Assembly: GCF_902652985.1 (NCBI RefSeq)
Contig: NC_047022.1
Span: forward strand, 8,990,001-9,054,000
DNA: 64,000 nt
Origin: Pecten maximus
Lineage: Eukaryota
Direction: 5' to 3'
Under the pieces are notes generated by a model. It was given only the letters and a program-made list of their open reading frames with translations. It was not told the origin of the DNA and searched no databases. Both the position numbers and the translations under genes were made by a program. Below, piece by piece: positions 2,942-59,172 of this stretch (the first letter of the stretch is position 1; the number at the start of each line of letters is the position of its first letter).

Positions 2942-4588
2942 ATGGCGAGTAAACTGTCTATTCGAAAGGCACAGGTACACGTGCCGGACACGTGTGCGTG
3001 GTGTGATAGTGTACAGGACGTGAACTGGTACTGTAATGACTGTCAGGAGGCTTTGTGTGATAAATGTAAGGAGACTCATCAGCGCGCGAGGAGGACAAGA
3101 AATGACGACGTTGTACCGATAAAACAGGCAAACAAAACCCGCCAGGCGGTACTACCAGAGGCATGTAAGGTACACCCCGGTAAAACATGCGATCTGTTCT
3201 GTACAGAGTGTAACGTCGCCATTTGTTCAATGTGTTTTACACAGAAACATAAACAGCATGCATTCAAACATTTTGAAGACGAAATTAACACCCAGAAACA
3301 TAACATGCGTGAGAAGTTGGAAACGTTAAAATTCAAGTTAGATCAGCTCAATGAGAAGTTATCACACCGTCGGCAAAAGAGTAAAACATTCAAAGAAAGT
3401 GTCGATATTATCTGTAAAGATGTCAAAGAGCGAGGAACAAAGCTGAAGGCAGAAATAGATTCTATAGTGGACAATGTCCTTACTGAATTATCATCACTGG
3501 TTGCTGAAGAAGACAAACTCCTTAAAGAGGATTGTGAACATGGTGATAAAAGTGTCAAACAAATAAAGCAGCTGATCGAAGAAGTGGAGCAGCTGTCGGA
3601 AAATCCATCAGGTGGAACTTTGTTTGAGCTGACGAGGAGACTTAGGACTACTATACCGCTTTATGACGTTACTGGTACGAGTACACATCCATACCTACCA
3701 AGTTTTGAAACCGGACAAATTGATACAGAACAGTTGACAAAAATGATCGGATTTGTTAAGGTCGGGAGTAGGAAGGATTCAACGCCTACATACGAGAAGA
3801 AGGATATCAATAATCAACATGTCCGAAAACTTACTTCATTCCAAACCCCTACAAAACTGTCCATAGTATCCATATGTCCAATAGACGACATCTATGCATG
3901 GATATCAATGTTTCTTTCTATGGACTTGCTCCGAGTCACTAAAAAGGGAAACGTCACGGAGACTGTGAAGCTTGATTTTGCACCTCGGAGTATAGCTTTG
4001 ACCAACTCTGGACTACTGATGACTCGAACGGATCAGTCACCGTTGATAAACAAACTGTCTGAGGACAGACGAGTGACGACCTTTGCCGACATTAGTCCAT
4101 TAAAGGCCTGGTTTATCAATGTTAGTGACACAGACGAGGTGTTCGTTAGTACTGGTACTACAACAATACTGGTACTAAACATGTCTGGGGACAAGGTTAG
4201 ACAAATCTCGTGTGGACAGGGTGGGAGCTTTATAGCTAGTTTGACCGGAGGGAATGTCGCGGTTATCACTAGAGGTATTGACTGTACTGAACTGAATATC
4301 ATCAACAAATCAGGACAGATCATATACACGTGGAGTGGAGAACTGGACAGTGGTCAGAAACTATGACAGAACACTCAGGATGGTATAGCATGTGATAAGT
4401 ATGACAGAGTATTTGTACCAGACTTAGTTACTCATCAGGTATACGTCGTCTCACGGAATGAGAGAAAGGCAAAATGTATCCTGGACAAGAAACACAGAGT
4501 ACGAAAGCCAACGATAGTAGGTGTAGACAGGTGTGGACATGTTTGGATCGGCTGTCGTGATGGTACAGTACATATTATGCAACTCTAA
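2942..4588 (+). pseudogene. TRIM-NHL-like gene copy 1 (B-box1/B-box2/coiled coil/NHL propeller) with premature in-frame TGA at 4364-4366
   Basis: ATG at 2942 (MASKLSIRKAQ). B-box1 CAWC..CNDC..CDKC..H and B-box2 CKVH..CTEC..CSMC..HKQH are present. TGA sits where paralogues have TCC/TCT/CCC. The frame continues intact (QNTQDGIACDKYDRVFVPD...GTVHIMQL) to TAA 4586-4588, giving the same 1647-nt length as copies 3, 5 and 6. Confidence 0.85.
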
Positions 4589-5527
4589 TCAACCAGGAGC
4601 TGCAGCTGTAGATAAACTATTGATGGTGGGATACTTCAATCCCTGTTCCTTACAATGACAGTTTAACTCTTTTTGAACTAGTTGTCGACTGTTTCGACTG
4701 TTGGGTTTTATACTTGTACATAAACACCACTTCATTTGACCTTTTCTTATGACGATTACTTTACCTCCTCAAATAGCCTGCCCCGTTTTTCTTGTTTTAT
4801 GATTGTCGATACAAGTAACAAAAAAATGAAAGCGAGTAATTTAACCAAAGGTGGCAACAAATGCATCGATAAAATGACGATCTGCTTATGTTTTAATCAC
4901 TTGACTTTTAAAGTAGAATCTGTCTGTCCTTATCATAGCCTTACTCATCCGACCAATCAGTGTCTAGTTTACATCTTGCCCGTGTCTGATTGATTCAGAT
5001 AGGAAAAAATCAAGCAATCACGTGAGGTACCGATTCAAATGTTTCTAAGTCAACACCAACAGTAGATGTATTGTGTCAGTAACATCGGCCTGATATTAAA
5101 TATTTTGTCTTTTGCTCACTTAGATACCCCCATCCTACTTTCCTATACATGTAATTCTCTCAGGATTGCAGACAAAATTGATCATATCGAACGTTTGTAA
5201 GGATTAAATAACATAACCAAAAGGCAGAGCCTCCAAAAAGTGTTACCTCCGCTAAACTGGAATAGATTAGTGCAGTGATAAATTAACTCACCCATAATAC
5301 CAACTATGAAAACAATCTACACGAACTATACTTAACACAATATTAATTAAGCGAGAGAGTTCCAGCGCTAAAATCCCTAAACTTACGCTAAAATATGTAC
5401 GTTGACATAATGTGTTTAAAGTGTCAGTATAATAGCCCTACAAGGATCAACAATATTCATGTTAAAGTAATGATGTCCAATTTTCAGGAAAAAGATTCGG
5501 AGGTTAATCAGTGATTTGCGGATATTT

Positions 5528-11589: not shown

Positions 11590-12095
11590 CTCTAGCTAGG
11601 CTCGGAGATGGATGACTTATAGCCATCGTTTTTCGTCGTGCGAAAGACTTTTGTTGCAGAACGCTACTCCTCCTTAACCCTTGGGTGGATTACAACCAAA
11701 TTTAATGTGAAACATTGTTGAAGGAGGGTTGATTGGTGGGGCCCCAAAAGGGGACCTTTGCTGTGATTTAATTTGCTTTAAAAGCTTCTTCTATACTGTT
11801 CAGTGGATTACAATCAAATTATAACCAAATTTTGTGTGAACATAAAGGGATGGCAATCGTGAGTTATATAAATAAGGCTGGTGTGACCCCTGGGGTCAGA
11901 GGAGTGAGGTTTCCAAAGTTGAACTTTGGTTAAATATTGCTTTAAAACGCTACTACTTAATACAAATGGGAACTTGGCTGAAATTTTGTATTAAGATTCT
12001 GCTTTTCCTTTAAGCCAAAATGGATAAAAACCAAAATTGATCTGAAACATAACTGCTTGCGTTTAGATAATTTATGGTAATTTGTTATAATGATG
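11590..12095 (+). mobile_element. HINE-type element truncated by the duplication breakpoint
   Basis: Matches 20363-21029 minus one ~161-bp monomer. Ends abruptly at ..ataatgatg fused to TRIM coding sequence. Confidence 0.65.
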
Positions 12096-13355
12096 AAATT
12101 CAAGTTAGATCAGTTCAATGAGAAGTTATCAAACCGTCGGAAAGAGAGTAAAACATTCAAAGAAAGTGTCGATATTATCTGTAAAGATGTCAAAGAGCGA
12201 GGAACAAAGCTGAAGGCAGAAATAGATTCTATAGTGGACAATGTCCTTACTGAATTATCATCACTGGTTGCTGAAGAAGACAAACTCCTTAAAGAGGATT
12301 GTGAACATGGTGATAAAAGTGTCAAACAAATAAAGCAGCTGATCGAAGAAGTGGAGCAGCTGTCGGAAAATCCATCAGGTGGAACTTTGTTTGAGCTGAC
12401 GAGGAGACTTAGGACTACTATACCGCTTTATGACGTTACTGGTACGAGTACACATCCATACCTACCAAGTTTTGAAACCGGACAAATTGATACAGAACAG
12501 TTGACAAAAATGATCGGATTTGTTAAGGTCGGGAGTAGGAAGGATTCAACGCCTACATACGAGAAGAAGGATATCAATAATCAACATGTCCGAAAACTTA
12601 CTTCATTCCAAACCCCTACAAAACTGTCCATAGTATCCATATGTCCAATAGACGACATCTATGCATGGATATCAAGGTTTGAGTGTCTGGACCTGCTCCG
12701 AGTCAATAAAAAGGGAAACGTCACGGAGACTGTGAAGCTTGATTTTACACCTTGGAGTTTGGCTTTGACCAACTCTGGACTACTGATGACTCGAACGGAT
12801 CAGTCACCGTTGATACACAAACTGTTTGAGAACAGACGAGTGACGACCTTTGCTGACATCACTCCATTAAAGGCATGGTTTATCAGTGTTAGTGACACAG
12901 ACGATGTGTTCGTTAGTACTGGTACTACAACAATACTGGTACTAAACATGTCTGGGGACAAGGTTAGACAAATCTCGTGTGGACAGGGTGGGAGCTTTAT
13001 AGCTAGTTTGACCGGAGGGAATGTCGCGGTTATCACTAGAGGTATTGACTGTACTGAACTGAACATCGTCAACAAATTAGGTCAGATCATACACACGTGG
13101 AGTGGAGAACTGGACAATGGTCAGAAACTATCTCAGACTATTCAGAATAGTATAGCATGTGATAAATATGACAGAGTATTTGTACCAGACTTAGTTACTC
13201 ATCAGGTATACGTCGTCTCACGGAATGAGAGAAAGGCAAAATGTATCCTGGACAAGAAACACAGAGTACGAAAGCCAACGATAGTAGGTGTAGACAGGTG
13301 TGGACATGTTTGGATCGGCTGTCGTGATGGTACAGTACATATTATGCAACTCTAA
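12090..13355 (+). pseudogene. TRIM-NHL-like copy 2, 5'-truncated (lacks codons 1-129 incl. both B-boxes); open coiled-coil + NHL ORF with new ATG
   Basis: Repeat sequence ...ttgttataATGATG (same as 21017-21029) is fused at 12095/12096 to AAA TTC AAG, equivalent to K130 of copy 1 at 3329. ORF is open to the shared stop. Confidence 0.8.
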
Positions 13356-15638
13356 TCAACCAGGAGATGCAGCTGTAGATAAACTATTGATGGTGGGATA
13401 CTTCAATCCCTGTTCCTTACAATGACAGTTTAACTCTTTTTGAACTATTTGTCGACTGTTTCGACTATTAAGTTTTATACTTGTACATAAACACCACTTC
13501 ATTTGACCTTTTCTTATGACGATTACTTTACCTCCTCAAATAGCCTGCCCCGTTTTTCTTGTTTTATGATTGTCGATACAAGTAACAAAAAAATGAAAGC
13601 GAGTAATTTAACCAAAGGTGGCAACAAATGCATCGATAAAATGACGATCTGCTTATGTTTTAATCACTTGACTTTTAAAGTAGAATCTGTCTGTCCTTAT
13701 CATAGCCTTACTCATCCGACCAATCAGTGTCTAGTTTACATCTTGCCCGTGTCTGATTGATTCAGATAGGAAAAAAATCAAGCAATCACGTGAGGTACCG
13801 ATTCAAATGTTTCTAAGTCAACACCAACAGTAGATGTATTGTGTCAGTAACATCGGCCTGATATTAAATATTTTGTCTTTTGCTCACTTAGATACCCCCA
13901 TCCTACTTTCCTATACATGTAATTCTCTCAGGATTGCAGACAAAATTGATCATATCGAACGTTTGTAAGGATTAAATAACATAACCAAAAGGCAGAGCCT
14001 CCAAAAAGTGTTACCTCCGCTAAACTGGAATAGATTAGTGCAGTGATAAATTAACTCACCCATAATACCAACTATGAAAACAATCTACACGAACTATACT
14101 TAACACAATATTAATTAAGCGAGAGAGTTCCAGCGCTAAAATCCCTAAACTTACGCTAAAATATGTACGTTGACATAATGTGTTTAAAGTGTCAGTATAA
14201 TAGCCCTACAAGGATCAACAATATTCATGTTAAAGTAATGATGTCCAATTTTCAGGAAAAAGATTCGGAGGTTAATCAGTGATTTGCGGATATTTTGTTG
14301 TAGATATCGCTATTGTAAACAGATATTGTGTTATATATATAATGATATTATATACAATTTTGATGATAGATAAACATTCTTACAAGTATATATAGCACGT
14401 GATTGTGGATATTGTGTAATTGTCTTATACGGATATTGTATAGATTTCCTATATGTACGCTAAGCGTACTTCAAGCTACATGGTTTATTTTTGATAGGAT
14501 GTCAATTAATGAAATCTGAAGGCAGGAATGTTAAGTGAGAAGTTGTCACGTGTTCGTATGTATTGTGTCTTATAGCGTTTCGTGACAGTGTGAGATCCTC
14601 GTAACTACGGTAACAGGCTATGGCTAGTCAAGGTCGAAGGTCAGTGTTGTTGTTTTTTTGTTGGATCGCTAGCTTTGGAGATACTGATTTATAATTCAGC
14701 TTGCATGAAAGTATATGAAGAGGGACATCCTGTTGATGTTTGTGACATACGCGTGGTATTGACGAGAGAGAACGCTGTGTTGTGAATAAAGAGTCATCAC
14801 TGTAAACCAAGTTTTACTTTTTATATTTTTTCATATTACTGGGTTTATCTTTAGAAAATATAACCTTATGAACAATAACCATTATAATTTGATGATATAT
14901 GTACATAAAAACATCAATTATTAATTATAACAAGAAATATCTTTAAAAAAGATAAACGGCATAGTTTTAAAGCTGGTGGTTATAAGGTAAAACTGCTGGT
15001 GAAATAAATCAGAGATCTATATACTCTAGTTTATACAATGAAAGTCTTTGAATTATTTAACGATCTAATGCGTTTCAGCACGGGTAACAAAATTATATAA
15101 GTTTAAATCAGTTTTGGTGATAATAAGACTGCATTTGAATCGGGAATATAATTTTATTAATGTGTCATTTGAAAAGATTCATTCTGCATTCAATCTTAAG
15201 TTGTTTCGTTTTTAACTGCATATCTGCATTTTGCATTTACCGCTACATTGCCCAATCGCATACTTCATCCTGACCATTAACGTCACCTGTCGCGTCATAT
15301 CCGGGGCAAAAAGAAAATTATACGGCTATGCCGGAAAAGGTTATCACAAATCGTTGATCAACACTCTGGATATGTATATTTTGTGACATACACGATAAAA
15401 CGCATGCGCACAACAAACTAAAACACATGAAAACAAAAATGGCTTCCAACGTGAATCGACTGCGGTTGAAAACGATAACAGCTTCCGCAATAAAGAGAAT
15501 AATGGCCAAATGGGTCAAGACAATCCTAGAATTACACCGGGGAAGCAATACAATAAGATAGGAATAGTTCAAACATGAAAACAGCAGAAATACGGACGCT
15601 GCTAGTATTCTGCTTGATTGTTGGATATTAGGCCATAA

Positions 15639-15779
15639 CAAACTTGGTAGTATTTATACAAACTCGGTAATGTTTATACCAAACTCAGTAATATTTACCC
15701 AAACTCAGTAATATTTACCCAAACTCAGTAATATTTACCCAAACTCAGTAATATTTACCCAAGCTCGGTAATATTTATA
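15639..15779. repeat. Minisatellite, 20-bp unit x7 (duplicate of 6871-7011)
   Basis: Tandem copies read directly. Confidence 0.95.
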
Positions 15780-23139: not shown

Positions 23140-24786
23140 ATGGCGAGTAAACTATCTATTCGTAAGGCACAGGTACACGTGCCGGACACGTGTGCGTGGT
23201 GTGATAGTGTACAGGACGTGAACTGGTACTGTAATGACTGTCAGGAGGCTTTGTGTGACAAATGTAAGGAGACCCATCAGCGCGCGAGGAGGACAAGGAA
23301 TGATGACGTTGTACCGATAAAACAGGCGAACAAACAAGCCGAGGTGGTACTACCAGAGATATGTAAGAGACACCCCGGTAAAACATGCGATCTGTTCTGT
23401 ACAGAGTGTAACGTCGCCATTTGTTCAATGTGTTTTACACAGAAACATAAACAGCATGCATTCAAACATTTTGAAGACGAAATTAACACCCAGAAACATT
23501 ACATGCGTGAGCAGTTGGAAACATTAAAATTCAAGTTAGATCAGTTCAATGAGAAGTTATCAAACCGTCGGAAAGAGAGCACAACATTCAAAGAAAGTGT
23601 CGATATTATCTGTAAAGATGTCAAAGAACAGGGAACAAAGCTGAAGGCAGGAATAGATTCTATAGTGGACAATGTCCTTGCTGAATTATCATCACTGGTT
23701 GCTGAAGAAGACAAACTCCTTAAACAGGAATGTGAACATGATGATAAAAGTGTTAAACAAATAAAGCAGCTGATCGAAGAAGTGGAGCAGCAGTCGGAAA
23801 ATCCATCAGGTGGAACTCTGTTTGGGCTGACGATGAGACTTAGGATCACCATACCGCTTTATGACGTTACTGGTACGAGTATACATCTATACCTACCAAG
23901 TTTTGAAACCGGACAAATGGATATAGAACAGTTGACAAAAATGGTCGGATTTGTTAAGGCCGGGAGTAGGAATGATTCAACGCCCATGTATGAGAAGAAG
24001 GAAATCAATAACCAGCATGTCCGAAAATTTACTACATTCCAAACCCCTCCAAACAAATCCATTCTATCCATATGTCTAATAGACGACACCTATGCATGGA
24101 TATCAAGGCTTGACTGTCTGGACCTGCTCCGAGTCAATAAAAAGGGAAACGTAACGGAGACTGTGAAGCTTGATGTTGCACCTTGGAGTTTGGCTTTGAC
24201 CGAATCTGGACTACTGATGACACAACGTGATCATTCAGCATTGATACACAAACTTTCGGAGGACAGGCGAGTGACGACCTTTGCCGACATCAGTCCATTA
24301 AAGTCCTGTAGTATCAGTGTTAGTAACACAGACGAGGTGTTCGTTAGTACTGACACTACAACAATACTGGTTCTGAACATGTCCGGGGACAAGGTTAGAC
24401 AACTCTCGTATGGACAGAGTGGGAGACGTATAGTTAGTTTGACCGGAGGGTATGTCGCTGTTACCACTGGAGGCGGTTTCTGTAAAGACCTGAATATCAT
24501 CGACAGATCAGGTCAGATCATACATACGTGGAGTGGAGAACTGGACACTGGTCAGACGCTACCCGGAACGAGACAGAATAGTATAGCATGTGATAAATAT
24601 GACAGAGTATTTGTACCAGACTTAGTTACTCATCAGGTATACGTCATCTCACGGAATGAGAAAAAAGCAAACTGTATCCTGGACAAGAAACATGGAGTAC
24701 GACATCCAATGGCAGTAGGTGTAGACTGGTGTGGACATGTTTGGATCGGGTGTCGTGATGGTACGGTACATATTATACAACTCTAA
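23140..24786 (+). CDS. RING-less TRIM-NHL-like protein copy 3 (548 aa)
   Basis: Intact ORF with two B-boxes, coiled coil and NHL-like blades (e.g. PWSLAL, NSIACDKYDRVFVPD, HPMAVGVDWCGHVWIGC). The ATG is conserved in all five full-length copies, just after a splice-acceptor-like tract. Confidence 0.9.
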   Translation: MASKLSIRKAQVHVPDTCAWCDSVQDVNWYCNDCQEALCDKCKETHQRARRTRNDDVVPIKQANKQAEVVLPEICKRHPGKTCDLFCTECNVAICSMCFTQKHKQHAFKHFEDEINTQKHYMREQLETLKFKLDQFNEKLSNRRKESTTFKESVDIICKDVKEQGTKLKAGIDSIVDNVLAELSSLVAEEDKLLKQECEHDDKSVKQIKQLIEEVEQQSENPSGGTLFGLTMRLRITIPLYDVTGTSIHLYLPSFETGQMDIEQLTKMVGFVKAGSRNDSTPMYEKKEINNQHVRKFTTFQTPPNKSILSICLIDDTYAWISRLDCLDLLRVNKKGNVTETVKLDVAPWSLALTESGLLMTQRDHSALIHKLSEDRRVTTFADISPLKSCSISVSNTDEVFVSTDTTTILVLNMSGDKVRQLSYGQSGRRIVSLTGGYVAVTTGGGFCKDLNIIDRSGQIIHTWSGELDTGQTLPGTRQNSIACDKYDRVFVPDLVTHQVYVISRNEKKANCILDKKHGVRHPMAVGVDWCGHVWIGCRDGTVHIIQL

Positions 24787-34932: not shown

Positions 34933-36582
34933 ATGGCGAGTAAACTGTCTATTCGTAAGGCACAGGTACACGTGCCGAACACGTGTGCGTGGTGTGATAG
35001 TGTACAGGATATAAACTGGTACTGTAATGACTGTCAGGAGGCTTTGTGTGACAAATGTAAGGAGGAGACCCATCAGCGCGCGAGGAGGACAAGAAATGAC
35101 GACGTTGTACCGATAAAGCAGGCGAACAAAACCGGCCAGACGGTACTACCAGAGGTATGTAAGGTACACCCCGGTAAAACATGCGATCTGTTCTGTACAG
35201 AGTGTAACGTCGCCATCTGTTCAATGTGTTTTACAACGAAACATAAACAGCACGCATTCAAACATTTTGAAGACGAAATTAACACCCAGAAACATAACAT
35301 GCGTGAGCAGTTGGAAACATTAAAATTCAAGTTAGATCAGCTCAATGAGAAGTTATCAAACCGTCGGCAAAAGAGTAAAACATTCAAAGAAAGTGTCGAT
35401 ATTATCTGTAAAGATGTCAAAGAGCGAGGAAGAAAGTTGAAGGCAGAAATAGATTCTATAGTGGACAATGTCCTTGCTGAATTATCATCACTGGTTGCTG
35501 AAGAAGACAAACTCCTTAAAGAGGATTGTGAACATGATGATAAATGTGTCAAACAAATAAAGCAGCTGAACGAAGAAGTGGAGCAGCTGTCGGAAAATCC
35601 ATCAAGTGGAACTTTGTTTGAGCTGACGAGGAGACTTAGGACCACTATACCGCTTTATGACGTTACTGGTACGAGTATACATCTATACCTACCAAGTTTT
35701 GAAACCGGACAAATTGATACAGAACAGTTGACAAAAATGATCGGATTTGTTAAGGCCGGGAGTAGGAATGATTCAACGCCCATGTATGAGAAGAAGGAAA
35801 TCAATAACCAGCATGTCCGGAAACTTACTACATTCCAAACCCCTCCAAACAAGCCCATATTTTCAATATGTCCAATAGACGACACCTATGCATGGATATC
35901 AATGTTTGAGTGTCTGGACCTGCTCCGAGTCAATAAAAAGGGAAACGTAACGGAGACTGTGAAGCTTGATTTTACACCTTGGAGTTTGGCTTTGACCAAC
36001 TCTGGACTACTGATGACTCGAACGGATCAGTCACCGTTGATACACAAACTGTCTGAGGACAGACGGGTGACGACCTTTGCTGAGATAAGTCCATTAAAGG
36101 CCTCTAGTATCAGTGTTAGTGACACAGACGAGGTGTTCGTTAGTACTGGTACTACAACAATACTGGTACTGAACATAATCGGGGACAAGGTTAGACAAAT
36201 CTCGTGTGGACATGTCGGGAAACGTATAGCTAGTTTGACCGGAGGGAATGTCGCTGTTACCACTGGAGGTGGTTACTGTAAAGAACTGAATATCATCGAC
36301 AGATCAGGTCAGATCGTACACACGTGGAGTGGAGAACTGGACAATGGTCAGAAACTATCCATGACGATTCAGAATAGTATAGCATGTGATAAATATGACA
36401 GAGTATTTGTTCCAGACTTAGTTACTCATCAGGTATACGTCATCTCACGGAATGAGAGAAAGGCAAAATGTATCCTGGACGAGAAACACGGAGTACGAAA
36501 TCCATTGGCAGTAGGTGTAGACAGGTGTGGACATGTTTGGATCGGCTGTGGTAATGGTACAGTATATGTTATGCAACTCTAA
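34933..36582 (+). CDS. RING-less TRIM-NHL-like protein copy 4 (549 aa; one-codon GAG duplication in B-box1)
   Basis: Intact ORF with the same architecture. KEET replaces KET. Confidence 0.9.
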   Translation: MASKLSIRKAQVHVPNTCAWCDSVQDINWYCNDCQEALCDKCKEETHQRARRTRNDDVVPIKQANKTGQTVLPEVCKVHPGKTCDLFCTECNVAICSMCFTTKHKQHAFKHFEDEINTQKHNMREQLETLKFKLDQLNEKLSNRRQKSKTFKESVDIICKDVKERGRKLKAEIDSIVDNVLAELSSLVAEEDKLLKEDCEHDDKCVKQIKQLNEEVEQLSENPSSGTLFELTRRLRTTIPLYDVTGTSIHLYLPSFETGQIDTEQLTKMIGFVKAGSRNDSTPMYEKKEINNQHVRKLTTFQTPPNKPIFSICPIDDTYAWISMFECLDLLRVNKKGNVTETVKLDFTPWSLALTNSGLLMTRTDQSPLIHKLSEDRRVTTFAEISPLKASSISVSDTDEVFVSTGTTTILVLNIIGDKVRQISCGHVGKRIASLTGGNVAVTTGGGYCKELNIIDRSGQIVHTWSGELDNGQKLSMTIQNSIACDKYDRVFVPDLVTHQVYVISRNERKAKCILDEKHGVRNPLAVGVDRCGHVWIGCGNGTVYVMQL

Positions 36583-42381: not shown

Positions 42382-43438
42382 AACAAGAGGCCCGATGTGC
42401 AAGTATCGGTCACCTGTCTCTACTACAACTTTAAAGTGGAGTGAGGTCATTTCTACAGATACTATGATGATTATCACCTTATTTAATTATCAGAGTAAGC
42501 TATGTTTATTCTTGTCAATAAAAGTTCTCGTCCTTCATTCCAGCATACTTTTGCCCTAATATCAGGTCTCTGAGACTTTTAGCGATCGCAAAATCATTGT
42601 TTAAAGATCTAAGCCTATGTCACCCCTGTGACCTTGAATGTAGGTCAAGGTCATTCATTAGAACAAACTTGGTAGCTATTCACCCCAGATTGCTACAGGC
42701 AGGGCCGACATCAAGTCCCTAGGTTTCTTGGTTGTTTAGAAGTTATTCAAATATCTAAGCCTATTTGACCAATGTGACCTCGAATGAGGGTCAATGTCAT
42801 TCATTTGAACAGACGTGGAAGCCCTTCACCCCAGAATGCTAGATGCCCAATATCAAGTCCCTGAGCTCCTTGCTTATTGAGAAAAAGTTGTTTAAAGTTT
42901 ATAGCATATTTGATTCATGTGACTTCGAATAAAGGTCAAGGTCATTCATTTGAACAAAACTGGTAGTCATCTACACCAGGAAACTTCAGGCCCAATATTA
43001 AGTCCCCTGGCCCCTTGCTTGTTGAGAGGAAGTTGTTAGAGGATTTAAGCCTATTTGCCCCATGTGACCTTGAATGAAGATCAAGGTCATTTATTTGAAC
43101 AAACTTGGTAGCCCTGCACGCGAGCATGCTACATACTTAATATCAAGTCCCTGGATCTCATGATTATTGAAAGGAAGCTGTTTGAAGATTATAGCCTATT
43201 TGATCTATGTGACCTCAAACGAAGGTCAATGTCATTTATATTAACAAACTTGGTAGCGCACCCCAGGATGCTACAGGCCTAATGTCAAGTCCTTGGGCCT
43301 CTTGGTTATTGAAAAGAAGCTGTTTGAATGTTTTAGCCTATTTGACTCATGTGACCTTGCCTGAAGACCAAGGTCATTCATTTGAACGAATTTGGTAGCC
43401 CTACTGGCCTAATATTAAGTCCCTGGGCATCTTTATTA
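42382..43438 (-). mobile_element. Near-identical copy of the 30896-31952 HINE satellite element
   Basis: Direct sequence match with the same truncation point. Confidence 0.75.
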
Positions 43439-46070: not shown

Positions 46071-47717
46071 ATGGCGAGTAAACTGTCAATTCGTAAGGCA
46101 CAGGTACACATGCCGGACACGTGTGCGTGGTGTGATAGTGTACAGGACGTGAACTGGTACTGTAATGACTGTCAGGAGGCTTTGTGTGACAAATGTAAGG
46201 AGACCCATCAGCGCGCGAGGAGGACAAGGAATGACGAAGTTGTACCGATAAAACAGGCGAACAAACAAGCCGAGGTGGTACTACCAGAGGTATGTAAGAA
46301 ACACCCCGGTAAAACATGCGATCTGTTCTGTACAGAGTGTAACGTCGCCATTTGTTCAATGTGTTTTACACAGAAACATAAACAGCACGCATTCAAACAT
46401 TTTGAAGACGAAATTAACACCCAGAAACATTACATGCGTGAGCAGTTGGAAACATTAAAATTCAAGTTAGATCAGTTCAATGAGAAGTTATCAAACCGTC
46501 GGAAAGAGAGCACAACATTCAAAGAAAGTGTCGATATTATCTGTAAAGATGTCAAAGAGCGAGGAACAAAGCTGAAGGCAGGAATAGATTCTATAGTGGA
46601 CAATGTCCTTGCTGAATTATTATCACTGGTTGCTGAAGAAGACAAACTCCTCCAACAGGATTGTGAGCATGATGATAAAAGTGTTAAACAAATAAAGCAG
46701 CTGATCGAAGAAGTGGAGCAGCAGTCGGAAAATCCATCAAGTGGAACTTTGTTTGAGCTGACGAGGAGACTGAGGACCACCATACCGCTTTATGACGTTA
46801 CTGGTACGAGTACACATCTATACCTACCAAGTTTTGAAACCGGACAAATTGATATAGAACAGTTGACAAAAATGATCGGATTTGTTAAGGCCGGGAGTAG
46901 GAATGATTCAACGCCCATGTATGAGAAGAAGGATATCAATAATCAACATGTCCAAAAACTTACTTCATTCCAAACCCCTCCAAACAAATCCATACTATCC
47001 ATATGTCCAATAGACGACACCTATGCATGGATATCAATATCTGGATGTCTGGACCTGCTCCGAGTCAATAAAAAGGGAAACGTCACGGAGACTGTGAAGC
47101 TTGATTTGACACCTTGGAGTTTGGCTTTGACCAACTCTGGACTACTGGTGACACTACAGGATCAGTCACCGTTGATATACAAACTGTCTGAGGACAGACG
47201 GGTGACGACCTTTGCCGACACCAGTCCATTAAAGTCCTGTAGTATCAGTGTTAGTAACACAGACGAGGTGTTCGTTAGTACTGACACTACAACAATACTG
47301 GTACTTAACATGTCCGGGGACAAGGTCAGACAACTCTCGTGTGGACAGGGTGAAAGCCGTATAGTTAGTTTGACCGGAGGGAATGTCGCTGTAACCACTG
47401 GGGGCGGTTTCTGTCAAGACCTGAATATCATCGACAGATCAGGTCAGATCATACACACGTGGAGTGGAGAACTGGACAATGGTCAGAAACTATCCCAGAC
47501 GAATCAGAATAGTATAGCATGTGATAAATATGACAGAGTATTTGTACCAGACTTATATACTAACCAGGTATACGTCATCTCGAGGAATGAGAGAAAGGCA
47601 AACTGTATCCTGGACGAGAGACACGGAGTACAACATCCAAAAGCAGTAGGTGTAGACAGGTGTGGACATGTTTGGATCGGCTGTCGTGATGGTACAGTAC
47701 ATGTTATGCAACTCTAA
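46071..47717 (+). CDS. RING-less TRIM-NHL-like protein copy 5 (548 aa)
   Basis: Intact ORF with the same architecture. Confidence 0.9.
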   Translation: MASKLSIRKAQVHMPDTCAWCDSVQDVNWYCNDCQEALCDKCKETHQRARRTRNDEVVPIKQANKQAEVVLPEVCKKHPGKTCDLFCTECNVAICSMCFTQKHKQHAFKHFEDEINTQKHYMREQLETLKFKLDQFNEKLSNRRKESTTFKESVDIICKDVKERGTKLKAGIDSIVDNVLAELLSLVAEEDKLLQQDCEHDDKSVKQIKQLIEEVEQQSENPSSGTLFELTRRLRTTIPLYDVTGTSTHLYLPSFETGQIDIEQLTKMIGFVKAGSRNDSTPMYEKKDINNQHVQKLTSFQTPPNKSILSICPIDDTYAWISISGCLDLLRVNKKGNVTETVKLDLTPWSLALTNSGLLVTLQDQSPLIYKLSEDRRVTTFADTSPLKSCSISVSNTDEVFVSTDTTTILVLNMSGDKVRQLSCGQGESRIVSLTGGNVAVTTGGGFCQDLNIIDRSGQIIHTWSGELDNGQKLSQTNQNSIACDKYDRVFVPDLYTNQVYVISRNERKANCILDERHGVQHPKAVGVDRCGHVWIGCRDGTVHVMQL

Positions 47718-48324
47718 TCAACCAGGAGATATAGCTGTAGATAAACTATTGATGGTGGGATACTTCAATTCCTATTCCTTACAATGACAGTTTAACTATT
47801 TGTTGACTGTTGCGATTGTTAGGTTTTATACTTGTACATAAACCCCACTTCATTTGACCTTTTCTTAAAACGATTACTTTACCTCTTCAAATAGCCTGCC
47901 CCGTTTTTCTTGTTTTATAATTGTCGATACAAGTAACAAGAACCTGAAAGCGAGTAATTTAGATGTTCTGTTTTTAACCGAAGGTGGCAATACATTCATC
48001 GATGAAATGACGGTCTGCTTATGTTTTAATCACTTGTCTTTTAAAGTAGAACCTGTCTGTCCTTATCATAGCCTTACTCACCCGACCAATCAGTGTCTAG
48101 TTTACATCTTGCCCGTGTATGATTGATGCAGTTAGGAATATAGGAATAAATTAATCAATCACGTGAGGTACCGAGTCAAATGTTTCTATGTCAAAACCAA
48201 CAGTAGATGTATTGTGTCAGTAACATCGGCCTGATATTAAATATTTTGTCTTTTGCTCACTTAGATACCCCCATCCTATTTCTCCACCTTCATCCGTAAG
48301 CTTCTGCTAGAAACTATATAATCA

Positions 48325-48816
48325 AATAAATAGAGGATATTGAATGGTTTCCCGTTTAATATAACATTTATTTCACGAGTATGACAGAATATCGAAATAT
48401 TCTGTCATTCGAGTGAAATATTCTGTCATTCGAGTTAAATATATGTTGCATTTAACGAGAAACCATTCAATTTTCTTTTTTTTGCATTTCATAAACTTGA
48501 AAACAAAATTAAAAACATAGTGTCAAAAGGTGCGATAATCAGTCATGGCGTCATTTCTTTGTGACTTTACTCCACGTCAATCCGACGGCACCATTTTGAA
48601 AGGACTGATCAACGCAATTTAAACGTTTTCTGCTGTTATCGGAGAATCTGTGCACGAATAACTAGCGTCTAGTGAGTATTTTGTCAAATACTCTCATTGA
48701 TCAAAAACATATTTTCACTGAAAAATCTTAATGTTTCACTGCAGCGATGAACAGTGAAAATATTAGTTTTATTTGTTTTATAAATTTCTATATTTCACTG
48801 GCAAAATGCAATAAAT
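48325..48816. mobile_element. Paralogous copy of the 37190-37712 palindromic element
   Basis: Same insertion point and sequence. Confidence 0.6.
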
Positions 48817-51800
48817 TTATTTACTCTGCATTGTCACCATGTAATCTTATCAAGCATAATAGAAAGTTATCATAATCCATACATAATTCTCATTAGTGTA
48901 GTGTTATTTAGAACAATGTCTGTAACGTCACTAAAAGACGTATGTTTGCTTGACGTCACTATATTAATTGTATTTTGACGTCACACAAATTCTTACTACT
49001 GAACAAAACCCCGATTGATCAAAGTAACATGAAACGATGTAGTTATACTGTGTACGAAGTGAATATCGTCAAAATGGAATTTATTAAAATGATGATTCTG
49101 AATTGACTCTTTTTTTCACGAACTAAATTGTTTTTCCGGGAATAGTCGTTGTATCATATGAAAATATCACATGGGCACCTCGAAGTTTAATTTTTGCATG
49201 CGATAACACAGTTATATGATTAATACAAGAACTTTAGGCTATACAATAACACTGTTATATGATGACTACAAAACCTTTAGTTTGACTTTGATATATATGT
49301 ATTAAACTCTCAAAATTGTAGACGAATTGGTCATATCGCACGGTATGAAGGCTTAAATAACATAATTAAAAGGCAAAGCCTGCAGAAAGCGTTACATCCG
49401 CTAAACTGGAATATATTACTGCAGTGATAAATTAACTCACCCATAATACCCACCATAGAAAACAATGTATACAAACTAAAATTATAATTGAGTGTTTTTA
49501 TGTGTACATTAACGATTTGTAGTAGTACAAATATCCGTTGATAATATGTGTTCCGTCTTGATAAAAATCTGTAGTCTTTTTGTCATTTAGGGTTATAGAA
49601 GGACAATCGAAAACGATGGCCCCAAGACGGATCTTAGCATCTACCATATAATGATTTTTATTTCTTCAATGTATCATATGTACTCTTCTTTTATGATCTT
49701 CCAACAAGGAGATTATGCATATAAAACTAAATCTCGAAGCTAAATTTCGGTGGGCGGCCTTATTTCTTTCTGGATCCGACTCAAAATAAAATTTCCATAA
49801 CTAGGGTCCAAGGGAAACCTGAATATGAAATTTGAAACAAAAGAGTCAGACAGATGGAATCAAATGATATATAAGAAGATTTTATGAATCAGAAATTATG
49901 ATGCTTCTCGATCAAATTTAAACCAGAACAGTGAAATTTTGCAGTAATGACCGAGGCGAATTGAAATATTCAATAGGTTTCCAAGCTTACAGTTCCGAAC
50001 AAGTCAAATTATACAATAATGTATATTTCCTGTACAAGTTGTATGTAACATGTATAAGTATTGCTTTAGCCGATATTTTTATATGGAGAACAATTATGTA
50101 TTTTGATGTATTGCTTTTTCCCTATTGTACATTGACAATATTGATTTCATGCGAATATATTTCTCATGGTTTGACGACAATGTCATGGTTTGAATATAAA
50201 TATTTCCGTAATATATTTGAAGATATAACACAAAAAATATCTTGATATACTTCACCTGTTTATTGTGAGAGTACACGCTTTTCTTTGCGATGTAGATCCA
50301 TAACATAAACATGTACTTAAGTTTAATACAATTCCTGAGGAAATGTGCCTTTACTGATAAAATCTTTTCTCTTATAAATCATTGTCCAAACTGCATCCGC
50401 CAGTCAAAAACCTTTTTACGGTGAAGTAAATTTTACGGTATGAAGAACACGGTTTTAAGCCAATGTCATGTTATGCAATTTCAATGAAAATGCGTTTAAC
50501 GAGAAAAGTTCAATTATATAGAATGTTCTCAATGTATCCTCATATGTTACATATAGTATCCGATACCAGTTTAAAAGATGGTGATACATATTTCTCAATT
50601 ACTATGTGACTAACGGTATGAACATTCATTTTGTGACAACTTTTAATAAACATATTGTTTTAAATGTATTGTATTTATAGTTCATTCCTTGTAATCTAGT
50701 CAGATCAGTAATTCATAAACCATTCGTCAGGTTAAATCGATGCGTATGTCTGTGTTTGATAATTGGTTGATATTATAAGAGACGTCCATTTGCATTTCAA
50801 GATCAAACACAATTTATGTTTACGTTTTAATATGGTCATCTGGCCACATTAATTTCCCTAGTGCTTCTCGTGTACACAATGGTTGTTTTTGCAACATATA
50901 TGATACACACGAACTGTACAGGTTATTCCGAACGATGCTTTTTTTGCATGTTTTGCTAAATTCAACAAACAGTTTAACAAATTGATGTCATAAGAGAAGG
51001 CCATGGTTAACCATTACTATGGCATATAGACAATTGATCGAGGTACTTCTGTTGAATTGGATCAGAGAAATGATTTATGGGATTACTAAAATATTTCTGG
51101 ATATGTTGTTTAGCGACCACATTCTGCAAAAACAGTTTGTTTCTCATGATCTAGTGTTTAGGATCGGGGATGGATAATATTACTGATTTTGTAAATTCCA
51201 CTAGATGACTCTAGGTAGCGACCTCTCCCTCTTTTGTCGCACATCTTATATATACACCACTAGGCTTTTGGAAAATTGCCGCTATACTTAATTAAATTGC
51301 ATAAATTTTCCACGTGTGCAAAGTGATAGGAATGCATACGTCGTCGGAGATAAAGTTATATATGATCACCATAAATAGTAATGAAAGTGTTCTAGCGGAA
51401 AACAAATATTTGTCAATATAACTTTACTGAATAATTCTTCCTATTTTTATTGAGATATAATCTCGTTATATAGCAAACATCAGTTATCTAGTAAAGATCT
51501 TTGTACATTGATTATAAAATGTTGTTTATTTTAATCTGGATATTTTGTTTGTTAACATGAACACAAGTAATGATGAATTATATCCAACAGTGTTACCCAA
51601 GGACAGGAGTCCGGGTGTAGTCTGTATTGTATACAGGACATATTATCGACCACTAACAAGGCGAACCTTGTGTCAGTATCTAGGACGATGACATTACACA
51701 ACTACTGTGTTCTGTAACAAGTGTTCCTGGGGGCACATTAAGCGAAACGATATTTTGTTGGGTTCCAGCTAAAATTGCATAATTGCTGAATTGCTAATTC

Positions 51801-57525: not shown

Positions 57526-59172
57526 ATGGCGAGTAAACTATCTATTCGTAAGGCACAGGTACACGTACAGGACACGTGTGCGTGGTGTGATAGTGTACAG
57601 GACGTGAACTGGTACTGTAATGACTGTCAGGAGGCTTTGTGTGACAAATGTAAGGAGACCCATCAGCGCGCGAAGAGGACAAGGAATGACGAAGTTGTAC
57701 CGATAAAGCAGGCAGACAAAACCGGCCAGGCGGTACTACCAGAGGTTTGTAAGATACACCCCGGTAAAACACGCGATTTGTTTTGTACAGAGTGCAACGT
57801 CGCTATCTGTTCAATGTGTTTTACAATGAACCACAAACAACATGCATTCAAACATTTTGAAGACGAAATTAACACCCAGATACATTACATGCGTGAACAG
57901 TTGGAAACGTTGAAATCCAAGTTAGGTCAGATCAATGAGAAGTTATCAAACCGTCGGAAAGAGAGCAAAACATTCAAAGAAAATGTCGATATCATCTGTA
58001 AAGATGTCAAAGAGCGAGGAACAAAGCTTAAGGCAGAAATAGATTCTATAGTTGACAATGTTCTTGCTGAATTATCATCACTGGTTGCTGAAGAAGACAA
58101 ACTCCTTAAACAGGATTGTGAACATGATGATAAAAGTGTCAAACAAATAAAGCAGCTGATCGGAGAAGTGAAGCAGCAGTCGGAAAATCCATCAGGTGGA
58201 ACTTTGTTTGAGCTGACGAGGAGACTTAGGACCACTATACCGCTTTATGACGTTACTGGTACGAGTATACATCTATACCTACCAAGTTTTGAAACCGAAC
58301 AAATTGATATAGAACAGTTGACAAAAATGGTCGGATTTGTTAAGGCCGGGAGTAGGAATGATTCAACGCCTACATACGAGAAGAAGGATATCAATAATCA
58401 ACATGTCCGAAAACTTACTTCATTCCAAACCCCTCCAAACAAGTTTTTAATATCCATATGTCCAATAGATGACATCTATGCCTGGATATCAATAATTGGA
58501 TGTCTGGACCTACTCCGAATCAACAAAGATGGAAACGTCACGGAGACTGTGAAGCTTGATTTTGCACCTCTGCGTTTAGCTTTGACCAACTCTGGACTAC
58601 TGATGACTCGACATGATCATTCACCATTGATACACAAACTGTCGGAGGACAGACGTGTGACGACCTTTGCCGACATCCGTCCATTAAAGGCCGGGGGTAT
58701 TAGTGTTAGTGACACAGACGAGGTGTTCGTTAGTACTACAACTACAACAATACTGGTACTGAACATGTCTGGGGACAAGGTTAGACAACTCTCGTGTGGA
58801 TTGGACTGGTGTCGTGTAGTATGTTTGACCGGAGGAAATGTCGCTGTTACCACTGGAGGTGGTTACTGTAAAGAACTGAACATCGTCAACAAATTAGGTC
58901 AGATTATACACACGTGGAGTGGAGAACTGGACAATGGTCAGAAACTATCCCAGACGAGACAGAATAGTATAGCATGTGATAGATATGACAGAGTATTTGT
59001 ACCAGACTTAGATACTCACCAGGTATACGTCATCTCACGGAATGAGAGAAAAGCAAAGTGTATCCTGGACGAGAAACACAGAGTACGACATCCAATGGCA
59101 GTAGGTGTAGACAGGTGTGGACATGTTTGGATCGGCTGTGTTGATGGCACGGTACATATTATGCAACTCTAA
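57526..59172 (+). CDS. RING-less TRIM-NHL-like protein copy 6 (548 aa)
   Basis: Intact ORF with the same architecture. It has distinctive propeller patches (LDWCR, AGG, PLR). Confidence 0.9.
   Translation: MASKLSIRKAQVHVQDTCAWCDSVQDVNWYCNDCQEALCDKCKETHQRAKRTRNDEVVPIKQADKTGQAVLPEVCKIHPGKTRDLFCTECNVAICSMCFTMNHKQHAFKHFEDEINTQIHYMREQLETLKSKLGQINEKLSNRRKESKTFKENVDIICKDVKERGTKLKAEIDSIVDNVLAELSSLVAEEDKLLKQDCEHDDKSVKQIKQLIGEVKQQSENPSGGTLFELTRRLRTTIPLYDVTGTSIHLYLPSFETEQIDIEQLTKMVGFVKAGSRNDSTPTYEKKDINNQHVRKLTSFQTPPNKFLISICPIDDIYAWISIIGCLDLLRINKDGNVTETVKLDFAPLRLALTNSGLLMTRHDHSPLIHKLSEDRRVTTFADIRPLKAGGISVSDTDEVFVSTTTTTILVLNMSGDKVRQLSCGLDWCRVVCLTGGNVAVTTGGGYCKELNIVNKLGQIIHTWSGELDNGQKLSQTRQNSIACDRYDRVFVPDLDTHQVYVISRNERKAKCILDEKHRVRHPMAVGVDRCGHVWIGCVDGTVHIMQL

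Follow-up and report, generated by a model that had tools for sequence, protein, structure and literature searches.

Do the short patches in which the genes of a scallop tandem array differ form a single binding surface, and has selection driven them apart? The window, the whole 64,000-nucleotide stretch of DNA analysed here (Pecten maximus C8:8.99–9.05 Mb), contains six units of a lineage-specific tandem array. The array extends beyond the window, with at least nine chromosomal units as well as unplaced contigs. A unit measures about 11.5 kb and holds one gene, whose coding sequence is confined to a single exon.

Gene copies and expression

All six open reading frames reported in the original prediction are real, and every patch string quoted there is present in the sequence, but only four of the six copies are intact. 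All lie on the plus strand, with coding starts (the ATG of MASKLSIRK) at 2942, 23140, 34933, 46071 and 57526. The intact copies c3 (23140..24786), c5 (46071..47717) and c6 (57526..59172) have 548 codons each; c4 (34933..36582) has 549, the extra codon being one additional Glu in B-box1. Copy c1 (2942..4588) is a full-length homologue of 548 codons that is disabled by an in-frame TGA at 4364–4366 (codon 475, in the D-A loop between blades 4 and 5). Copy c2 (12096..13355) is disabled by 5' truncation: it lacks the 5' third, matches the other copies only from 12096 (codon ~130 onward), and has neither promoter nor B-boxes. It still has an open ORF (12090–13355), and its propeller is a mosaic of patches found in other copies. 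Across the chromosome, three of nine copies are disabled.

Residue numbers refer to c5, which also served for structure modelling and for the RNA check. RNA-library contigs at least 96% identical to c5 (four runs, three studies) cover 46010–49900 and almost nothing of the upstream spacer (44000–45970), placing RNA on the gene in this region. The evidence consists of assembled contigs without paralogue-specific levels, and the library type was guessed for two of the four runs.

Domain architecture and predicted dimer

The encoded proteins consist, in order, of B-box1, B-box2, a long coiled coil and a six-bladed NHL-type propeller. In c5 (plus strand throughout), the B-boxes (residues 16–60 and ~74–110; 46116..46400) match Pfam PF00643 in two stretches (E 3e-13). 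The coiled coil (46401..46790) is made up of helix 111–219 and a return helix (224–240), and the propeller spans residues 295–547 (46953..47711), with blade 6 closed by the N-terminal strand 295–301. The AlphaFold2 model has a mean pLDDT of 89.6 (about 95 in the propeller) and contains helix 111–219 and 24 propeller strands.

Foldseek neighbours of the model include the NHL domains of TRIM2, TRIM3, Thin, Lin41 and Brat (TMt 0.70–0.77; TM 0.76 to TRIM2 NHL), with the Brat and Lin41 NHL-RNA complexes 4zlr and 6fq3 among them. Family profiles match TRIM2 NHL at 3e-49. With a profile restricted to pectinids, the B-box/coiled coil of TRIM28 was matched at 2e-18 and the NHL domain of Brat at 4e-5. 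Pfam, however, recognises no NHL repeats in these proteins. The propeller that had been called NHL is thus NHL-type by modelled fold and by profile, though not by Pfam.

RING is absent from the encoded proteins. The architecture is therefore RING-less and TRIM-like, as in Brat, rather than that of a canonical TRIM protein or TRIM E3 ligase, and the earlier label "TRIM" has to be withdrawn in favour of TRIM-like. The N-terminal part had been described as near-invariant; it is a conserved scaffold, as is the propeller core, but the linker between the c5 B-boxes (residues 64–69) also varies.

This constant scaffold had also been expected to oligomerise. In agreement, modelling predicts that two chains pair in antiparallel fashion through the coiled coil, as in TRIM proteins. 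The c5 homodimer prediction gave an ipSAE of 0.66 (best of three controls, 0.00), at least 91% of contacts agreed between runs with a partner pLDDT of at least 82, and the contacts were antiparallel (169:169, 133:208). When the ipSAE mark was calibrated on microbes, 21 of 30 same-chain-pair structures passed and 0 of 23 single-chain structures did; on eukaryotes 17 of 29 passed, yet only 1 of 7 where there was no older solved relative. It should also be noted that a pass for this coiled coil may reflect model memory of solved TRIM coiled coils.

Variable patches map to the top face of the propeller

DSSP strands of the confident AlphaFold2 model bear out the blade register that had been assigned by eye. 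All 12 variable patches, two per blade, are D-A or B-C loops: the patches described as lying before strand a take in the D-A loop and the opening residues of strand A, and those after strand b coincide with the B-C loops. Blade 1 is entered by a D-A loop at residues 302–309 (46974..46997; TKLSIV/PNKSIL/PNKPIF/PNKFLI), and its B-C loop (322–327; 47034..47051) shows up to six residues at sites 324 and 325. In blade 2, the patches are the incoming D-A loop (344–351; 47100..47123) and the B-C loop (362–367; 47154..47171), where site 363 has six residues. For blade 3 they are the end of the D-A loop with the start of strand A (388–392; 47232..47246), with seven residues at site 390, and the B-C loop (405–407; 47283..47291), with five at site 405. 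The D-A loop into blade 4 (424–433; 47340..47369) has 11 variants in 12 copies and is followed by the B-C loop at 442–450 (47394..47420). A long D-A loop leads into blade 5 (473–481, including sites 476 and 478; 47487..47513), whose B-C loop is at 495–498 (47553..47564). The last two patches are the D-A loop into blade 6 (519–525, including site 524; 47625..47645) and the blade 6 B-C loop (539–541; 47685..47693), with six residues at site 539. All coordinates are on the plus strand.

For the D-A and B-C loops, mean pairwise amino acid diversity was 0.348, more than the 0.159 of the A-B and C-D loops and the 0.144 of the strands (Mann-Whitney; top versus bottom loops, p = 4.6e-5; top loops versus strands, p = 1.5e-8). 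Among the 18 propeller sites with at least four residues, top-face loops (±2 residues) account for 17 and bottom loops for none. Such a concentration greatly exceeds what chance would give. The D-A and B-C loops make up the canonical ligand-binding "top" face of a propeller, and the variable loops would accordingly share one face, as judged from propeller topology rather than measured geometry. We regard the face-restricted diversification as almost certainly real.

Mizuhopecten yessoensis has undergone an expansion of its own, independently, in which the same propeller positions have diversified. The clades of the two species are each separately monophyletic, site diversity is correlated between them (Spearman 0.42, p = 2e-12), and eight sites with P > 0.5 are common to both, versus 1.2 expected.

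A probable diversified recognition surface

These data suggest a protein family whose members are variable and serve in intracellular recognition, and a diversified recognition surface is well supported. The best explanation overall, which we consider rather more probable than its competitors taken together, is that the array consists of tandem RING-less TRIM-like genes carrying a selected variable-face repertoire, likely directed against non-self. An antiparallel coiled-coil dimer would present two propellers, and the B-boxes may drive higher-order assembly. Diversifying selection would have driven the top faces apart, and the array would encode a repertoire of proteins differing in the intracellular ligands that they bind. 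Recognition of rapidly evolving non-self, such as pathogen components (viral or other) or selfish elements, would be the most likely setting. Since RING is absent, the proteins would have to act through a partner ligase, or else by sequestration or repression in the manner of Brat. Pathogen recognition by these proteins is plausible by analogy with the systems compared below, and the innate-immune, arms-race setting put forward in the original prediction would likewise be an analogy; that the ligand is pathogen-derived is a serious possibility, if slightly short of an even call.

A different account, which seems to us unlikely, holds that these are diversified endogenous regulators with no pathogen role. 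The paralogues would have sub- or neo-functionalised after tandem duplication, and the top face would bind RNAs or host proteins, with mRNAs, transposon transcripts, and developmental or gametic factors as possible targets. The architecture is identical to that of Brat (two B-boxes, coiled coil, NHL-type propeller, no RING), the Brat and Lin41 NHL-RNA complexes are structurally close, and change on the face with which the relatives bind ligand would suit any ligand switch. However, the top loops are not uniformly basic, unlike an expected RNA-binding face. Their net charge ranges from −7 to +3 across copies, which does not favour the RNA-binding analogy to Brat and LIN-41 drawn in the original prediction. 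Furthermore, two young, species-specific expansions have changed repeatedly and independently at shared sites, a pattern more typical of conflict than of a stable division of endogenous targets. Gene turnover, with three of nine copies disabled, is also high.

Selection on the top-face loops

If the top faces form a selected repertoire, their divergence should be distinguishable from relaxed constraint alone, in which the exposed top loops of young, redundant duplicates drift and there is no variable repertoire. We compared omega on a structural partition fixed a priori. For P. maximus, omega was 0.88 in top loops, 0.47 in bottom loops, 0.41 in strands and 0.36 in the N-terminal part; the corresponding M. 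yessoensis values were 1.18, 0.36, 0.44 and 0.31. The pooled P. maximus top-loop value is not above 1 (bootstrap 0.57–1.47) and is statistically compatible with neutrality, and several copies are pseudogenes, as expected in a partly decaying family. In contrast, the equally exposed bottom loops stay constrained in both species, which argues for diversifying selection rather than general loop tolerance. The M. yessoensis top-loop value, the low N-terminal omega and the persistence of intact 548-codon ORFs at a dS of about 0.15 also speak against relaxation.

Site models gave nominally strong support. For P. maximus the M2a-M1a comparison yielded 2dlnL values of 45.6 and 29.3, and for M. yessoensis a value of 58.9; omega2 was 3.5–4.3 on 6–7% of codons. 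Every one of the seven sites that exceeded P > 0.8 in P. maximus fell on the top face. Nevertheless, these statistics are inflated because recombination between paralogues is strong. The PHI test was significant (p <= 5e-4), segment trees of the paralogues were incongruent, and the four-gamete test indicated at least 50 recombination events, a count to which recurrent mutation adds. Sequence passes between paralogues through recombination or gene conversion, and patch variants are therefore shared among copies in mosaic combinations. Under a simulated M1a null with a fresh genealogy every 10 codons (24 replicates), the statistic was 3.9–19.3 in 23 replicates and 53.3 in one, an extreme that exceeds both P. 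maximus values and is near that of M. yessoensis.

In a tree-free cross-validation, dN was measured at sites picked in the other species. Relative to the dS of the whole propeller it was 2.0-fold in P. maximus (bootstrap 1.2–3.2) and 2.9-fold in M. yessoensis (bootstrap 1.9–4.2); both intervals exclude 1. Omega in M. yessoensis was 2.35 at codons flagged in either species, a site set partly chosen on its own data. At the P. maximus hot codons, NG86 dS was high (0.36–0.38, on about 14–18 synonymous sites), and local omega is therefore near 1, as relaxed constraint would have it. The expected excess of dN over dS at variable sites thus appears in the cross-validated comparison and not in the pooled P. 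maximus omega. Taking this together with the identical positions in both species, we conclude that top-face divergence was probably driven by selection, and relaxed constraint as the sole cause appears distinctly improbable.

The dS of the ±2 flanking codons was normal in P. maximus (0.178 versus 0.152) and in M. yessoensis (0.243 versus 0.210), and strictly synonymous differences at hot codons were not consistently raised across species (18% versus 10% in P. maximus; 6.6% versus 12–14% in M. yessoensis). Patches produced by short-tract conversion from diverged donors or by a local error-prone process would fit the strong recombination, the mosaic sharing, the raised P. maximus hot-codon dS and the many hot codons that differ at two or three positions, but imported tracts or hypermutation should raise synonymous change in flanks and hot codons alike, and such an artefact, which would have to strike top-face loops alone and at the same codons in two species, is therefore very improbable.

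Comparison with known systems

In the searchable literature, we found no description of face-restricted hypervariability in an NHL-type propeller and no report of parallel selection in scallops. Brat and Lin41 bind their ligand, RNA, through the NHL top face, and the variable loops of the scallop proteins lie on this same face. TRIM-NHL proteins (TRIM2, TRIM3, TRIM71/LIN-41 and Thin) and Brat form subfamily C (Marin 2012, PMC3503706). They share with the scallop proteins the order B-box, B-box, coiled coil and six-bladed NHL-type propeller, and Brat likewise has no RING. The NHL domains of TRIM2, TRIM3, Brat and Lin41 resemble the scallop propeller in fold, and profiles detect the remote homology, but identity to solved NHL domains is 12–17%; moreover, the scallop proteins have no filamin domain. 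TRIM-NHL proteins are conserved, single-copy regulators with a conserved top face, whereas the scallop genes form a young, species-specific tandem array with a hypervariable one.

TRIM5alpha and the teleost finTRIM/btr families (van der Aa et al. 2009, PMC2657112) are, like the scallop genes, lineage-specific, tandemly duplicated TRIM-type genes that combine a constant B-box/coiled-coil scaffold with a C-terminal recognition domain and restrict diversification to a few surface loops. The recognition domain is B30.2/SPRY in TRIM5alpha and finTRIM and a beta-propeller in the scallop, and the RING E3 domain of the former is missing in the latter. The likeness would be one of functional analogy; the scallop genes are not known to be antiviral or inducible.

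The HNWD genes of Podospora anserina (het-d/het-e/het-r), which encode WD40 non-self recognition proteins (Paoletti et al. 2007, PMC1805685; Chevanne et al. 2010, PMC2873952), are likewise hypervariable at a few sites in each blade, on the face through which their beta-propeller interacts. In both systems, exchange between paralogues, pseudogenes included, reshuffles the variants while the remainder is kept homogeneous. However, HNWD proteins are fungal NACHT-WD40 NLR-like proteins that shuffle whole, nearly identical WD repeats, whereas the scallop scaffold is B-box/coiled coil, its six blades are mutually dissimilar, and exchange acts between whole array genes.

Finally, the array is part of a bivalve-wide inflation of B-box genes, described as B-box/TRIM expansions (Regan et al. 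2021, PMC8382680) and, in Crassostrea gigas, through TRIM candidates for resistance to OsHV-1 (PMC9437489). The genes concerned carry immune-term annotation and are sometimes linked to viral resistance. Those reports deal in gene counts or associations.

Tandem copies and their state

The genome searched comprised 918 Mb in 3,983 contigs, with the window at G000:C8:8990001-9054000. The plus strand of the window holds six open reading frames of 421–594 codons at a period of ~11.5 kb. Coding starts were set by the annotated proteins, which begin MASKLSIRK. Among the window copies (c1 to c6, all on the plus strand), coding regions lie at 23140-24786 (c3), 34933-36582 (c4), 46071-47717 (c5) and 57526-59172 (c6). 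Copy c1 (2942-4588) is disabled by an in-frame TGA at 4364-4366, and c2, whose homology to the other copies begins only at 12096, is disabled by loss of its promoter and first ~130 codons. Array copies outside the window were found at C8:8981105 (c0), C8:9058487 (c7; locus G000:C8:9056987-9061579) and C8:9071141 (c8). A 72-bp deletion takes out the ATG of c7 and disables it. Of the nine copies on the chromosome, six are intact and c1, c2 and c7 are disabled.

Relative to c5, which serves as our reference copy, the c7 deletion runs from -11 to +61; the start codon and the first B-box1 zinc ligands are lost, and the remaining ORF is open. The two copies are 99.5% identical over a 589-bp 5′ flank and 94.3% identical over the CDS.

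Further, more diverged copies were found on the unplaced contigs C647 and C321. Identity to c5 is 73–84% for the copies on G000:C647 and G000:C321, of which one is intact and several carry frameshifts or run off the contig edge. They could represent a second sub-array or a diverged haplotype, a point relevant to presence/absence variation. The array is a member of a large family, since at least 72 additional genome matches were detected at E ≤ 1e-10. All relatives at 40–61% identity came from other scallops (Mizuhopecten yessoensis, Argopecten irradians and Ylistrum balloti). On M. yessoensis contig NEDP02005031.1, an 849-codon ORF (14950-17499, minus strand) lies 3.3 kb downstream of a family member and on the opposite strand; it may be a mobile-element gene.

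The proteins are divergent TRIM-NHL relatives without a RING

Pfam searches of the window proteins returned the B-box family PF00643 twice (E 3e-13), and the same double match was seen in 35 of 35 pectinid members. No Pfam RING family matched the window proteins at E ≤ 1, nor any of the 35 pectinid members. Only 15 residues stand ahead of B-box1, annotated NCBI homologues likewise begin MASKLS, and a search of all frames of the window revealed no stop-free C3HC4-type pattern. The Pfam NHL family (PF01436) did not match the window proteins at E ≤ 1, in which no C-terminal family was found besides the B-boxes, and it matched only one of the 35 pectinid members (E 0.009). Because Pfam gave B-boxes only, the NHL assignment relies on searches by fold and by profile.

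An AlphaFold2 model of c5, built on a 111-sequence alignment, has a mean pLDDT of 89.6, with 10-residue block means of 89–98 in the propeller. The model contains B-box1, B-box2, a 109-residue helix (111-219) and a return helix, followed by 24 strands (residues 295-547) that form six four-stranded blades, the N-terminal strand 295-301 closing blade 6. Using Foldseek, the six-bladed folds matched were the NHL domains of TRIM2, TRIM3, Thin, Lin41 and Brat, together with the NHL-derived Pizza6 designs (TMt 0.70–0.77, identity 12–17%); TRIM2 NHL aligned at TMt 0.76–0.77 and rmsd 3.0. Foldseek matches to G-beta reflect the combination of helix and propeller. A profile from the wide alignment found TRIM2 NHL (3e-49) and the TRIM28 B-box/coiled coil (6e-34), and a pectinid-only profile found TRIM28 (2e-18), the TRIM3 B-box/coiled coil (3e-10), Pizza6 (1e-8) and Brat NHL (4e-5). 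Based on these fold and profile matches, the scallop proteins are divergent TRIM-NHL relatives of Brat architecture, with no RING, two B-boxes, a coiled coil and a propeller (classification scheme from PMC3503706).

The C-terminal domain is a beta-propeller by both AlphaFold2 and Foldseek, so B30.2/SPRY is not the recognition domain. No near-identical repeats among blades were reported by any tool for this NHL-type, six-bladed propeller. A NACHT or NB-ARC domain is likewise absent, the N-terminal part being B-box and coiled coil according to Pfam. The N-terminus, which begins MASKLSIRKAQVH..., is not signal peptide-like, so judging from sequence the proteins should be cytosolic or nuclear.

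Homodimer prediction for residues 62-292 gave an ipSAE of 0.66, with 0.00 for the best of three controls. The ipSAE mark was attained by 21 of 30 proteins solved as one-chain pairs and by none of 23 solved as single chains; among eukaryotic proteins, 17 of 29 attained it, but only 1 of 7 when there was no older solved relative. Contact agreement was at least 91% in the dimer runs and partner pLDDT at least 82. The predicted contacts (169:169, 133:208 and 129:212) are antiparallel, as are the solved TRIM coiled coils. Due to this match, the pass may partly be memory of solved TRIM coiled coils by the model. The coiled coil that follows the B-boxes is therefore described here as a predicted antiparallel dimer.

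Variable patches lie on one face of the propeller

From the sequence alone, the original prediction had proposed 12 variable patches, two per blade, on one face of the propeller, with a blade register assigned by eye. Every patch string that it quoted was found in the sequence, and the register agrees with the DSSP strands of the model. The patches placed before strand a correspond to the D-A loop and the first residues of strand A, and each of those placed after strand b is a B-C loop. In antiparallel blades of four strands, the D-A and B-C connections can only lie on the same face, and the A-B and C-D connections on the other. The D-A/B-C face is conventionally called the top, and WD40, Kelch and NHL propellers bind their ligands there. 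For WD40 propellers this use of the top face has been described (PMC1805685).

Mean pairwise amino-acid diversity among 12 P. maximus copies was 0.348 in the top loops (D-A and B-C), compared to 0.159 in the bottom loops (A-B and C-D; Mann-Whitney, p = 4.6e-5), 0.144 in the strands (p = 1.5e-8) and 0.125 in the N-terminal part. No other part of the protein varies as much as the top-face loops. A site with at least three residues is present in 12 of 12 top loops, and no bottom loop has a site with more than three. The claim of a single variable face was borne out by the 18 propeller sites with at least four residues: 17 are in top loops (±2 residues), none is in a bottom loop and one is in neither, with loops assigned to faces by strand order and patch exposure and contiguity deduced rather than derived from coordinates.

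Across copies, the top loops carry net charges from -7 to +3. With loops this variable and charge spread over this range, the copies do not have a conserved, positively charged top face of the RNA-binding type. The charge range speaks weakly against a common RNA-binding mode and for protein or other ligands.

A second, small variable spot lies beyond the propeller and was missing from the original list. The linker between B-box1 and B-box2 (window 46260-46277; c5 residues 64-69) reads KQAEVV, KTRQAV or KTGQTV. It varies in both P. maximus and M. yessoensis, and site 66 has a posterior above 0.5 for ω > 1 in both.

The array is homogenised as a mosaic

Trees of five gene segments conflict and are well supported. 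For example, c0 groups with c3 at 100% support over codons 300-383 and with c6 over codons 383-466. The PHI test was significant (p ≤ 5e-4) both for the whole CDS, where the observed value was 13 SD below the permutation mean, and for the propeller on its own. The four-gamete test gave a minimum of 50 recombination events (Rm), a count to which recurrent mutation adds.

Each patch has 5–11 variants among 12 copies, distributed as a mosaic. The patches of c2 are mostly like those of c1, with one like c0 and another like c4/c7; five patches are common to c4 and c7, and the codons for "DWCRV" in patch 424-433 are common to c0 and c6. Outside the genes, units 5 and 4 are 98.4% identical over 3.9 kb of intergenic sequence (window 41001-44864 vs 29514-33379), compared to about 93% for the gene regions of these two units and 78–95% for other parts of their spacers. 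Identity of inter-unit spacers overall is 78–98%. Together these patterns show that the array is homogenised in mosaic fashion.

In the whole-unit alignment, there is an apparent peak of diversity over the propeller (0.11–0.13 vs 0.04–0.09 in the near flanks). This peak was not used as evidence of selection; the 11.5-kb unit alignment can be trusted only between about -570 and +3000 of the ATG, and indels misalign the distal spacers.

Selection or tolerance on the top face

We compared pooled Nei-Gojobori (NG86) ω across a structural partition that was set a priori and is therefore free of ascertainment on variability. In P. maximus, ω was 0.88 for top loops (bootstrap 0.57–1.47), 0.47 for bottom loops, 0.41 for strands and 0.36 for the N-terminal part. 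The corresponding values in M. yessoensis were 1.18, 0.36, 0.44 and 0.31. Taken as a whole, the top face is about neutral, while the equally exposed bottom loops are constrained. The M. yessoensis set was the DNA of nine single-exon paralogues, with P0018 excluded for lack of colinearity between gene and protein. In P. maximus, intact-gene analyses left out c1, c2 and two fragmentary copies from the unplaced contigs (u647c and u321b), and the frameshifted u647b and the fragment u321a were excluded throughout.

Site models were fitted with our own GY94 site-class likelihood (M0, M1a and M2a; F3x4), using one tree per segment and common ω classes. M2a improved on M1a for 12 P. maximus sequences in 5 segments (2ΔlnL 45.6; ω2 3.5, 7.2% of codons), for the 8 full-length sequences in 10 segments (seven intact copies plus c7, which lacks only its start; 2ΔlnL 29.3; ω2 4.3, 5.7% of codons) and for M. 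yessoensis (2ΔlnL 58.9; ω2 3.7, 6.7% of codons). The P. maximus sites with P > 0.8 (325, 363, 390, 405, 476, 478 and 539) are all on the top face.

Under a plain M1a null, the likelihood-ratio statistic (LRT) reached at most 4.0 in 12 replicates. Under an M1a null with an independent coalescent genealogy for every 10 codons, analysed with 10 segment trees, it was 3.9–19.3 in 23 of 24 replicates and 53.3 in the remaining one. As the recombining null inflates the LRT, chi-square p-values are invalid for this array and were rejected. By rank, the P. maximus result (~0.08) is only suggestive, and the M. yessoensis result, judged on the null calibrated for P. maximus, is marginal. More broadly, site-model LRTs on recombining tandem arrays are unfit to be read as chi-square p-values.

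The P. maximus array and the M. yessoensis cluster form separate monophyletic clades, indicating that their expansions (or homogenisation) were independent. Site diversity is correlated between species (Spearman 0.42, p = 2e-12), and in M. yessoensis the top loops are again the most diverse (0.43 vs 0.23, p = 3e-4). Eight sites (66, 324, 363, 390, 405, 478, 524 and 539) have P > 0.5 in both species, compared to 1.2 expected. In a tree-free cross-validation, sites were picked in one species and measured in the other. At these sites, dN was 0.36 in P. maximus against a propeller-wide dS of 0.18 (ratio 2.0, bootstrap 1.2–3.2), and 0.66 in M. yessoensis against 0.23 (ratio 2.9, bootstrap 1.9–4.2).

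In the codons up to two positions from a hot site, dS is normal (0.178 vs 0.152 in P. maximus; 0.243 vs 0.210 in M. yessoensis) and ω is low (0.42–0.45). At the hot codons themselves, strictly synonymous differences show no consistent rise. Their NG86 dS in P. maximus is high (0.36–0.38), a value that comes from few synonymous sites and is inflated by multi-hit codons.

The original prediction had named site models as its check, and the outcome is mixed: M2a does fit better than M1a and the cross-validated dN/dS is 2.0–2.9, but the LRT is inflated and pooled ω for the P. maximus top loops is 0.88. Our best reading, which we consider quite probable while short of proof, is diversifying selection on a subset of top-face residues.

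RNA libraries contain c5-like sequence

In one study, two runs gave RNA-seq contigs that match 46010-47742, which includes the c5 CDS, at 96% identity or more and continue to about 49900. Contigs of two more runs, from two other studies and of a library type that could only be guessed, match over the same span and at the same identity. Next to nothing matches 44000-45970. The short length of the contig pieces is what a collapsed multigene family would give; the pieces carry variants and may be alleles or unassembled paralogues. Sequence like c5 is thus present in RNA libraries, a statement of presence only and not of level, tissue or induction.

Upstream, contigs of three runs match just about 44 nt at 45169-45212 and are unlike the genome on both sides. 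One contig match starts exactly at the ATG at 46071 with 62 unmatched letters ahead, and this ATG is preceded by a T-rich tract ending in AG. These matches suggest a spliced 5′ UTR or, alternatively, a repeat. In all four runs, depth spikes at 48334-48530, about 600–800 bp downstream of the stop codon, probably at a repeated element within the 3′ region.

A candidate recognition surface and its known counterparts

In the mechanism that we propose, a dimer would display two propellers whose top faces differ among paralogues and would bind different intracellular ligands. Conversion among array members, including the disabled ones, would recombine loop variants, and selection would keep these distinct even as the scaffold is homogenised. 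Lacking a RING, the proteins would need a partner for their output, or would act by sequestration or repression.

Bivalves suffer mass mortalities from herpes-like viruses and vibrios and have inflated families of innate-immune genes. To our knowledge, they have no adaptive immunity, and we know most of these inflated families by gene counts only. The present data give a candidate recognition surface at the level of residues. It comprises two loops in each blade, all on the same face of an NHL-type propeller; these have diversified in parallel in both scallop species, and gene conversion has reshuffled them. Should the ligands prove to come from pathogens, the scallop genes would be the first TRIM-like family of restriction factors or sensors to use a propeller instead of SPRY, and an animal counterpart to the fungal hypervariable WD40 receptors. 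They could then also supply markers for breeding resistant stock, and swapping loops between paralogues would make them a tractable system for the origin of new specificities. If the ligands are endogenous, the array would be an example of how Brat/LIN-41-type regulators radiate.

Expansions of B-box and TRIM genes in bivalves, loop-restricted diversification of TRIM B30.2 domains and hypervariable propeller faces in fungi are already known. In the searchable literature we found no earlier account of TRIM-NHL hypervariability in scallops or other bivalves, and none of a mollusc in which an NHL-type propeller on a TRIM-like scaffold without a RING is the domain that diversifies, at the same sites in two lineages.

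A pathogen context is suggested by analogy with TRIM5alpha and finTRIMs (PMC2657112), with the fungal HNWD genes (PMC1805685, PMC2873952) and with the literature on bivalve gene families, in which a B-box orthogroup is expanded (PMC8382680) and candidates for oyster resistance to OsHV-1 include ten TRIM genes (PMC9437489). We tentatively raise the possibility, which we hold to be rather unlikely as a whole, that the scallop genes are an NHL-propeller, RING-less counterpart of TRIM5alpha and the finTRIMs. Conversion would reshuffle twelve top-face loop cassettes with c1, c2 and c7 as donor reservoirs, giving each haplotype, and probably each individual, its own repertoire for intracellular pathogen recognition, in parallel in at least two pectinid lineages.

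The scallop proteins share B-boxes and a predicted antiparallel coiled coil with the TRIM (RBCC) family but are without its RING. Like TRIM5alpha and the finTRIMs, they combine lineage-specific tandem expansion with diversity confined to loops of the C-terminal recognition domain; those proteins use B30.2/SPRY and RING-dependent signalling, whereas the scallop proteins have a propeller and no RING. With the fungal HNWD genes they share hypervariable positions on the interaction face of a propeller and exchange among paralogues (comparison from PMC1805685). The fungal proteins carry NACHT/NB-ARC and near-identical WD40 repeats, while the scallop proteins join a B-box/coiled coil to a six-bladed propeller of the NHL type.
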